DNA of 62,919 nucleotides, the filler included, from Octopus bimaculoides (taxonomy: Eukaryota): the NCBI RefSeq assembly GCF_001194135.2. It is 8 parts of 7 records of this genome, joined end to end, with 100 filler letters (N's around TTAATTAATTAA, not from the genome) between each part and the next. Parts side by side here need not be neighbours in the genome. Positions count along the whole stretch, not along the records: positions 24,320 to 30,935 come from NC_068982.1; 7 more parts are not named here. One strand, written 5' to 3'. The notes under the pieces are model-generated. The model saw only the letters and a list, made by a program, of their open reading frames with translations. It was not told the origin of the DNA and made no database searches. Shown in pieces: positions 28,265 through 29,324 of this stretch. Position 1 is the stretch's first letter. Each line of letters starts with the position of its first letter. Both the position numbers and the translations under genes were made by a program.

Positions 28265-28475
28265 ACAATGTTACTGAGCGAAGTCTGTATGAAATTAGAT
28301 GAGAGTTCAAATAGATATTTCACAGTACCTTCTTTCGTTTAGTTTAGTTTTAAAAAGTTCCTCAATTTGAGTTTATAAGTCGAGTGTTTCTCACTTCAAA
28401 TATTTCACTGTTTCACTGTGTACTTCGTTGATGAGTGTCAAAGTTTCAGAATAAAGTTTCATAACGCCGTGATTG

Positions 28476-28483
28476 TTTATATA
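28476..28483 (-). promoter_or_regulatory. TATA box (TATATAAA)
   Basis: tttatata on plus; implies a TSS near 28450 and a 5'UTR of ~185 nt. Confidence 0.7.
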
Positions 28484-28538
28484 GCCATACCATATTCAAA
28501 TCTGTCTGATCTCATTTCAGTTTAATTTCCCACTTGAG

Positions 28539-28548
28539 CCATATATGG
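28539..28548. promoter_or_regulatory. CArG box / SRE core (CCATATATGG), SRF site
   Basis: Exact CC(A/T)6GG about 55 bp upstream of the TATA box. Confidence 0.65.
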
Positions 28549-28598
28549 CTAAGCTCCACCCCTTCGTTTTGTTAAAAAGCCGCACCTCCAACGCAAAT

Positions 28599-28606
28599 TG
28601 ACGTCA
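28599..28606. promoter_or_regulatory. Full palindromic CRE (TGACGTCA)
   Basis: Exact 8-mer about 115 bp upstream of the TATA box. Confidence 0.7.
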
Positions 28607-29324
28607 CTGAATGCGCCGTACAACAAACATTACACGCAACAGAAGTCACAGGAATTTATTACTTGCAGAAAGAATTCAAATATTAAAATTATACGTATAT
28701 GTATTATACGGGTATATTACTTTCAGAACAGGTATCAAGAACTTTACTGTTATATTTTTGTAAAAACCCGCGAATTGAATACGGTCAAGGATTTATTTAC
28801 TCTAGTTATTCTGAACTAGATTACCGAATATGTCTGACTGCTCCACCGACTTACTATCCAATGAACAATAATGAATATCCGTTTTCGAATAACACCGCGA
28901 TTTTACTTCGATTTCGTTGCGTAAATTTACTTCACATGGGTGTTTCATATATACGGCTACTTAGGGCGGTGGAAAAAGGCATTAAGGCCACAGCGCAAGT
29001 TTCTTTTAATTCATCCCTTGAAGGATACTCTGCTTTCAGAAAGGCTAAACCTCAGGTATCAAATCGTTACCTAATATAACAGAGTATTAATTTTTTTTGT
29101 TTGTTTCTATGTATGTATGTATGTATGTATGTATGTATGTTTGTATGTGTGTTAATATAGGCATTTGAAATTACAACTAGGGCCGCTCCACGTTTATATA
29201 TACATTATAAATATTCTACACATCGTTCAACACACACGCATACACACACATACACACACATACACACATACATACATACGCACAGACAGACATACACATA
29301 CTCACGCACATATATATATGCATA

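Follow-up and report, generated by a model that had tools for sequence, protein, structure and literature searches.

Textbook accounts of long-term plasticity in molluscs centre on the cyclic AMP (cAMP)-PKA-CREB pathway. Several feedback genes of the cAMP pathway are driven by cAMP response elements (CREs), among them ICER (transcribed from the CREM P2 promoter), the long and short forms of PDE4, and SIK1. PKI-gamma terminates PKA-induced immediate-early gene (IEG) expression, FSH raises PKI in Sertoli cells, and vertebrate PKI was reportedly found by Castellucci in 1982 to block molluscan PKA. We know of no endogenous PKI-type inhibitor described in any mollusc. The defining architecture of PKI is an N-terminal inhibitory domain followed by a nuclear export signal (NES) at residues 37-46, and the protein is disordered with transient helices (PMC7723848). 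A PKI motif is also embedded in SMOOTHENED, where it acts as a decoy substrate inhibiting the PKA catalytic subunit, PKA-C (PMC11322411). In octopus, published IEG work has so far dealt with the candidate genes creb and egr1 only (bioRxiv 10.1101/2025.10.16.682951). Here, we analysed a stretch of 62,919 nucleotides from Octopus bimaculoides (the window), in which a 6.6-kb piece (24320-30935, from NC_068982.1) carries an intronless gene for a PKI-like protein. An initial annotation had proposed an IEG-type promoter for this gene and a negative feedback loop in which PKA induces its own inhibitor. We find that 28440-28610 is most likely the proximal and core promoter of this (-) strand gene, which is known so far only from cephalopods. 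The initial interpretation is partly supported, in that its anatomical and evolutionary predictions hold; to the whole loop as stated we assign a probability of roughly 0.4-0.45.

All promoter elements were read on the (-) strand, upstream of the open reading frame (ORF; 27575..28264). A full palindromic CRE, TGACGTCA, is located at 28599..28606 (about -154 to -147 from the inferred transcription start site, TSS). It is the single copy in the piece, and from its start to the first T of the TATA box there are 123 nt. The CArG box, or serum response element (SRE) core, CCATATATGG lies at 28539..28548 (about -96 to -87) within the 14-nt palindrome AGCCATATATGGCT. Directly 5' of the CArG box is a GT/GC box, GGGGTGG (28556..28562; GGGGCGG in Argonauta), by consensus a candidate Sp/KLF-type site, and a conserved block, TGGAGGTGCGG, occupies 28580..28590 between CRE and CArG. 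The TATA box TATATAAA is found at 28476..28483 (-31 to -24). Downstream of it, an initiator-like TTATTCT (YYANWYY) at 28448..28454 places an A at 28452, the inferred +1, 31 nt from the first T of TATA. CRE, CArG, GT/GC box and TATA all fit within ~160 bp of the TSS, and the promoter elements, the initiator-like one included, are canonically spaced.

The position of the TSS near 28452 is inferred from the initiator-like element, the distance to TATA and the end of an RNA contig. This contig (L006, run SRR3401912, an octopus meta-transcriptome according to a virome paper, PMC11662614) is colinear with the window from 28430 to 27073, with 82% identity over ~1.4 kb. Its 5' end corresponds to about 28440, 12 nt past A 28452 and 43 nt from the first T of TATA, and no AG acceptor lies ahead of this end in the window. 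Since the contig is colinear with the genome, the gene is without intron across its leader, coding sequence (CDS) and at least 500 nt of its 3' untranslated region (UTR). The unspliced (-) strand leader (28202..28452), colinear with L006 from the contig's own 5' end, contains one in-frame upstream AUG at 28264. The (-) strand 3'UTR of at least 500 nt (27073..27574) is covered by L006 down to 27073 and has an AATAAA at 27545. The CRE, CArG and TATA positions given in the initial annotation were confirmed exactly by direct reading and pattern searches. The TSS that it expected near 28450, as opposed to a start elsewhere or a spliced 5'UTR, and its short intronless ORF likewise agree with the contig. 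Contigs L002-L005 were also considered as RNA and were judged to be genomic; their ends fall at microsatellites or poly-A runs, and they are silent on the TSS.

The promoter was compared at four orthologous loci, namely the window, a second Octopus species (L002), Argonauta hians (L001) and a more distant lineage (L008). Protein identity to Octopus is 27-34% in the distant lineage (ERZ21867824, ERR3431203, SRR9970007, SRR2137285x, SRR29271469) compared to 64% in Argonauta, and it is therefore presumed to be decapodiform. Conservation had been named at the outset as a check on the promoter, and the order CRE, CArG, TATA is indeed kept at all four loci. The CRE TGACGTCA is exact in L002, Argonauta and L008, and its spacing to CArG amounts to 58 nt in the window and 59, 67 and 59 nt in L002, Argonauta and L008, respectively. 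The A/T core of the CArG box varies while the CC(W)6GG consensus stays (CCATATATGG in both Octopus species, CCTTTTATGG in Argonauta, CCTTATTTGG in L008); CCTTATTTGG and CCATATATGG we take to be SRE cores of the Egr1 type. In the Argonauta alignment, GGGG(T/C)GGAGCTTAGCC is conserved directly ahead of CArG. The block TGGAGGTGCGG is identical in the window, L002 and Argonauta and has no recognisable counterpart in L008. At the TATA region, CTATATAAAC is kept in L002 and Argonauta, and TATATAA is found in L008 as well as in the paralogue loci L007 and L010. As its initiator-like element, L002 has CTTTATTCT and Argonauta has TCATTCT, in the latter species 32 nt from TATA. In L008, two extra half-CREs, AACGTCAG and GTGACGTAT (L008 4381-4404), are inserted between CArG and TATA, and through this insertion the CArG-TATA spacing, ~65 nt elsewhere, reaches 164 nt.

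Further support for selection on the promoter is provided by the pattern of divergence. Between the window and L002, identity is 90.4% in the promoter (28470-28610), close to the 91.7% of the CDS, and 76.6% in the 5'UTR, 70.6-77.1% in the upstream flanks (flanking non-coding sequence 70-77% overall) and 82.7% in the 3'UTR, which is above the flanks. Synonymous sites are saturated between Octopus and Argonauta (dS ~1.0-1.2), and the sole non-coding island in a BLAST comparison of the window with Argonauta measures 57 nt and is located in the promoter. We judge the promoter to be real because motifs, order and spacing persist across distant cephalopods, and it is very probably functional and under selection.

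A paralogous gene has a related promoter. In two species, paralogue promoters contain two full CREs 54 nt apart together with CCAAT and TATA. They span L007 4659-4758 and L010 661-760 and are nearly identical in both species; ATTGATTGG (CCAAT) lies between the two copies of TGACGTCA, and TATATAA follows 38-39 nt past the proximal CRE. Three paralogue transcripts (L011, L012, L013) start 4-88 nt downstream of the first T of TATA, and none of them reaches upstream of TATA. The presence of CRE and TATA in both orthologue and paralogue promoters marks this design as a family trait, with CArG specific to the orthologue group of the window. A full CRE within ~200 bp of a TATA-directed TSS, as in IEG-type promoters, is thus found in the four orthologues and the paralogue. 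In mammals, the promoters that respond most strongly to cAMP were reportedly found by Conkright in 2003 to be those that combine a TATA box with a CRE no more than ~200 bp from the TSS. We consider it fairly likely that the octopus promoter is cAMP-responsive.

Could the cluster be a functionless product of AT-rich sequence? In dinucleotide-preserving shuffles of the 6.6-kb piece, 0.10 CREs, 0.34 CC(W)6GG and 1.8 copies of TATATAAA were expected. Relaxed TATA matches are very frequent in this sequence (~21 per 6.6 kb). All three motifs, with a relaxed TATA, came to lie at most 150 bp apart in 1 of 3000 Markov-matched simulations, or ~0.002 expected per 6.6 kb. Scaled up to a genome of a few Gb, this rate would yield several hundred clusters by chance, and the cluster alone is therefore weak evidence. 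Clustering and spacing had been put forward as the signal; by itself, the cluster has no genome-wide significance, and conservation carries the case. A chance origin has the frequency of relaxed TATA and of such clusters in its favour, but each motif, the order and the CRE-CArG spacing are kept in four lineages despite saturated synonymous divergence, and the cluster is correctly placed relative to the 5' end of L006. As far as sequence comparison can tell, a chance origin is effectively refuted, and we regard it as extremely improbable. The surroundings of the promoter had also been described as unique and CpG-retaining. The first description is borne out: the piece is AT-rich (35% GC) with abundant TA/TG/TATG microsatellites and short interspersed element (SINE) copies, in the manner of an octopod genome, and ~27000-29090 is its sole long stretch without repeats, all SINE copies and microsatellites lying outside. 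The second is not distinctive as a promoter mark, since the observed/expected CpG ratio is 1.02 in the whole piece and 0.96-1.36 across the promoter.

The ORF encodes 229 amino acids from the first AUG and 208 amino acids from the AUG at 28201 (MLDNEV...). The latter has an A at -3 and is the start common to every lineage. The AUG at 28264 is the only ATG before this conserved start; it is in frame and has a T at -3. The extension from it comprises 21 residues, MVSSLPCEFSYQANNLSYLIN, that are poorly conserved, and in all four octopods the frame is open with an AUG. With the weak context of the upstream AUG, these features suggest leaky scanning or two isoforms. Among the four octopods, the ratio of nonsynonymous to synonymous substitution rates (dN/dS) is 0.16-0.27, indicating a real protein under purifying constraint. 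The window protein shares a 90%-identity cluster with the Octopus vulgaris hypothetical protein CAI9717243.1, and the family consists of 11 proteins only, each unnamed or 'hypothetical'. Relatives come from two Octopus-like species (Logan assemblies), from Argonauta hians ('hypothetical protein Ahia01_000557500') and from a distant set with 27-34% identity, in which P0007 and P0016 form an orthologue group and P0005, P0006, P0014 and P0015 a paralogue group. The ORF in L008 (ERZ21867824) shows a 1-nt frameshift in a C-run at ~4990-5000, GCGCCCCACCGAC in place of GCACCTACCGAT in transcript L009, which is probably an assembly homopolymer error and not the mark of a pseudogene.

Two RRNAL motifs, ~100 disordered residues apart, give the protein its likeness to PKI. 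The N-terminal pseudosubstrate-like motif KYGPYRRIRRNALANIME is encoded at 28124..28177 on the (-) strand (residues 30-47; RRNAL at 28139-28153), and the C-terminal motif FQSSFAAIRRNALHNLLETLT at 27728..27790 on the same strand (residues 159-179; RRNAL at 27752-27766). The RRNAL copies themselves cover residues 38-42 and 167-171, with a non-phosphorylatable Ala at the P site. This Ala is invariant in both motifs among the aligned members that have them, though a single mutation would turn it into Ser or Thr. The C-terminal RRNAL, and likewise RRNALH.LLETLT, is invariant in 8/8 aligned family members; the N-terminal RRNAL does not vary across the eight N-termini that were aligned, the truncated P0007 being without this motif. 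The N-terminal motif has Arg at P-6, Arg-Arg at P-3/P-2, Ala at P and Leu at P+1. The C-terminal motif reads RRNALH(D/N)LL compared to RRNA(I/L)HDIL in PKI. An invariant F159 occupies P-11 of motif 2 with Ala at P-6, and motif 1 has R35 at P-6 with aromatics at P-10 and P-13. In the paralogue, the N-terminal motif FSSSQRKYRRNAL combines Phe at P-11 (F14), Ser at P-8 and Arg at P-6 (R19), as in PKI. The positions that match PKI include P-11 (aromatic), P-8 (Ser), P-6 (Arg) and P+2 to P+5 (HD(I/L)L), all beyond those by which the motif had been picked out in the initial annotation.

Profile comparisons point in the same direction. When aligned by hhalign to a vertebrate PKI-alpha alignment, the C-terminal FQSSFAAIRRNALHNLLETLT matched FIASGRTGRRNAIHDILVSSA (probability 80-84%, E 1e-5), and the N-terminal KYGPYRRIRRNALANIME matched the same PKI segment, PKI-alpha residues 11-28 (probability 59%, E 9e-5). 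Among 24,736 Pfam families scanned, the best family of the relatives was PKI (PF02827), with matches in P0005 (E 5.4e-4, 20.7 bits, both motifs matched), P0015 (E 0.0019, 18.9 bits), the Argonauta protein P0004 (E 0.03, 15.1 bits) and P0016 (E 0.26, 12 bits); in the relatives these matches fall at the C-terminal motif. A leucine-rich, NES-like stretch, L189-x2-L192-x3-V196-x2-L199-x-L201 (27662..27700, (-) strand), lies 19-31 residues past the pseudosubstrate Ala. Its five residues are all invariant among octopods, as a pattern match of a kind common in helices. In P0007 and P0016 the alignment continues into the NES of PKI, LKQLYLLQLTI being paired with LSLKLAELDI at a spacing that agrees to +/-1. 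The term PKI-like, used from the beginning for this gene, turns out to be better founded than could be known at that point: both motifs align to the PKI inhibitory region, PKI is the top, sub-threshold Pfam family in four relatives, and an NES pattern follows motif 2. We propose that the protein would be PKI-like in mechanism, with a similarity that is local, and we see an even chance that it inhibits PKA-C.

Taken together, these features suggest the following loop. CREB activated by cAMP/PKA would bind the CRE (~-150) and SRF-type MADS factors the CArG box (~-90), and both would jointly drive stimulus-dependent transcription from the TATA/initiator core. The product would be a largely disordered protein with two PKI-type pseudosubstrates and an NES-like stretch past the second. 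It would occupy the active-site cleft of the free PKA catalytic subunit as a decoy substrate and might export PKA-C from the nucleus, and the outcome would be a negative feedback on PKA/CREB signalling that acts with a delay. It is from promoter and protein features that we infer occupancy by these factors, the inducibility and kinetics of transcription, the binding and inhibition of PKA, and its export from the nucleus. A more far-reaching scenario is that coleoids evolved and duplicated a bivalent PKI-like family with transcription hard-wired to CREB, and to SRF in one paralogue. Its two motifs might engage two PKA-C molecules, or PKA and a related basophilic kinase. With the octopod -TQV tail, the protein could then act as an activity-induced, possibly synaptic PKA brake that times cAMP-dependent plasticity. 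We regard this scenario as speculative and rather improbable.

A number of observations weigh against the loop, and they nourish two rival explanations. On the promoter side, no Ets/TCF site next to CArG is conserved across the orthologues; a GGAA at 28527-28530, 8 nt 3' of CArG, is present in the two Octopus species only, with no counterpart in Argonauta or L008. In the paralogue, neither promoter (L007, L010) has a CArG box. The first 500 nt of the 3'UTR (27073-27574) contain one ATTTA and no UUAUUUAWW nonamer, so AU-rich elements are few, and the orthologous 3'UTR in L006 has four ATTTA. For L006, the 5' end is that of an assembled contig and not a mapped cap. In addition, TGACGTCA binds ATF/Jun dimers as well, CArG with TATA is typical of muscle genes, and CRE with TATA is typical of neuropeptide and spermatid genes. 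The promoter might thus be functional and yet tissue-specific or constitutive rather than immediate-early, acting in muscle through CArG/SRF or in neuroendocrine or germ cells through CRE/CREM-type factors. L006 stems from an unstimulated whole-animal meta-transcriptome, so basal expression exists. Such expression, however, is compatible with added inducibility. A full palindromic CRE is located at most 150 bp from TATA in both paralogues, and the gene is short and intronless like many IEGs. For these reasons we consider tissue-specific or constitutive control to be unlikely, although a serious competitor.

On the protein side, the promoter could be CREB/SRF-regulated and the protein still not be a PKA inhibitor. 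RRNALxxLxExL-(N/T)(Q/P)-helix would then be a helical-hairpin module with another partner, for example as a transcription co-regulator with an LxxLL-like LHDLL, or by offering a different basophilic kinase, such as PKG or a member of the CaMK/AMPK family, a pseudosubstrate or a docking site, and the resemblance to PKI would be convergent or coincidental. AlphaFold2 (AF2) on an 8-sequence alignment predicts helix-turn-helix pairs at residues 35-47/51-60 and 157-177/180-198 with the best local pLDDT (65-76); both RRNAL segments are helical, each paired with the following helix, whereas in PKI the pseudosubstrate is extended when bound. Pfam PKI gave no match to the window protein itself at E<=10, and the scores of the relatives (12-20.7 bits) are all under the 25-bit gathering threshold. 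A search of 1.84 billion representatives with the family profile did not retrieve PKI. Similarity to PKI spans ~20 residues only and could be convergent. With 208-229 amino acids the protein is three times the size of canonical PKI (70-76 amino acids) and has two motifs instead of one. The second motif is without the P-6 Arg and the first without an aromatic exactly at P-11, and the conserved core LLETLT..E...L..LY exceeds the PKI-like part. Against another partner stand the rank of PKI as top family of 24,736 in four relatives, the independent match of both motifs to one PKI segment including P-11, P-8 and P-6, and the invariant P-site Ala. Moreover, the confidence of the AF2 model is low (mean pLDDT 51, pTM 0.24), and PKI, too, is disordered and forms helices transiently (PMC7723848). 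We therefore hold a different partner to be rather unlikely, and PKA-C remains our preferred target.

Several other features of the protein and its surroundings were recorded. The linker at 27800-28070 (residues ~64-155) is Asp/Glu-rich in octopods and Ser-rich in the distant paralogue proteins P0005, P0006 and P0015; constitutive negative charge in the former may correspond to charge added by phosphorylation in the latter. All four octopods share the C-terminal YPYIETYFDKYLTQV (27578-27622, residues 215-229) without change, and the distant relatives do not have it. The sequence ends in -TQV (27578..27586, (-) strand), which resembles a class I PDZ ligand, and a role as PDZ ligand would be a guess from the motif. 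Scanned against Pfam, the window protein gave nothing but weak matches of low complexity in its acidic linker, and a PDB sequence search with the family profile gave nothing relevant. An Rfam scan of the 6.6-kb piece returned zero RNA families. Divergent from the promoter, a 126-amino-acid ORF at 28699-29079 on the (+) strand is probably no gene, as it is no better conserved in L002 than neutral sequence (54-88% per 50 bp). A further match to CC(W)6GG, CCAAATTTGG, is found at 29423-29432, some 970 nt ahead of the TSS. The microsatellite at 29100-29400 separates this match from the promoter, the alignment with L002 does not extend to it, and we see nothing that ties it to the promoter. A single SINE-like element has copies at 24334-24590, 25019-25395 and 30800-30935. 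It consists of a head (...GGCACCTTGGGCAAGTGTCTTC...CCGACCAAAGC.TTGTGAGTGGATTTGG...), an internal TA/TG microsatellite and a tail (...CATCGCTTGA...GTTTACGTCCCCGTAAC.TAGCGGTT...), and a fragment of the head is present in the Argonauta locus too (L001 3658-3714). An assembly gap (N run, 26356-26399) adjoins a long TA microsatellite and blocks the tracing of the distal 3' region past ~27000.

PKI-type pseudosubstrate inhibitors and CRE/SRE promoters are known already; tandem motifs in a cephalopod-restricted, duplicated and CRE-wired family appear to be new. In the literature on RRNAL and on molluscan or cephalopod PKI, no account was found of the octopus PKI-like family or of any cephalopod PKI. 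A sequence search with human PKI-alpha, its query confirmed by 100%-identity matches, gave only vertebrate PKI among the 120 matches listed, and cephalopods may have a canonical PKI as well. Even on its own, the promoter part would rank among the first cephalopod promoters of the CRE/SRE kind to be footprinted phylogenetically. If the protein is a CREB-induced PKA-C inhibitor, it would represent a new lineage-specific feedback that controls how long PKA and nuclear CREB signalling lasts in the neurons of cephalopods, and the design of PKI pseudosubstrate plus NES would be older or more evolvable than the vertebrate family implies. The compact 160-bp CRE/SRE/TATA module would also be a candidate activity-reporter promoter, and the protein a native PKA-silencing tool for octopus neurobiology.

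Among known systems, vertebrate PKI-alpha/beta/gamma (PF02827) are closest to the protein. Both share RRNA(I/L)HD(I/L)L, in octopus RRNALH(D/N)LL, and the P-11 aromatic, P-8 Ser and P-6 Arg recur in one or other motif. In both, an inhibitory motif lies near the N-terminus (MLDNEVYLKY... in octopus, MTDVETTYADF... in PKI), an NES-type leucine pattern follows ~16-20 residues past the pseudosubstrate, and the protein is predicted to be largely disordered. Unlike PKI, the octopus protein is under the Pfam threshold, has 208-229 instead of 70-76 amino acids and carries two motifs with a ~100-residue linker. Its family has the extra core LLETLT..E...L..LY and the octopod -TQV tail, and comprises only cephalopod-type sequences so far. 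SMOOTHENED provides a precedent for a short PKI-like pseudosubstrate outside the PKI family that binds and blocks PKA-C (PMC11322411), a block that is predicted here. It differs as a seven-transmembrane receptor whose motif has a modest affinity (~0.8-0.9 uM) and depends on GRK2 phosphorylation to bind efficiently, whereas the octopus protein is soluble and has two motifs.

The promoter resembles those of the c-fos/Egr1 type, with a full CRE, an SRF-consensus CArG, a GC/GT box and TATA within ~160 bp of the TSS. It is unlike them in having no conserved Ets/TCF site, a single CArG, a distal CRE with a proximal CArG, and few AU-rich elements in the 3'UTR. The tandem full CREs near TATA in the paralogue recall the CRE cluster of the ICER promoter. 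With ICER, PDE4 and SIK1, the octopus gene would share the logic by which PKA/CREB induces an inhibitor of its own pathway. Where these genes act on CRE occupancy, cAMP level or CRTC, the proposed target of the octopus protein is the PKA catalytic subunit itself.

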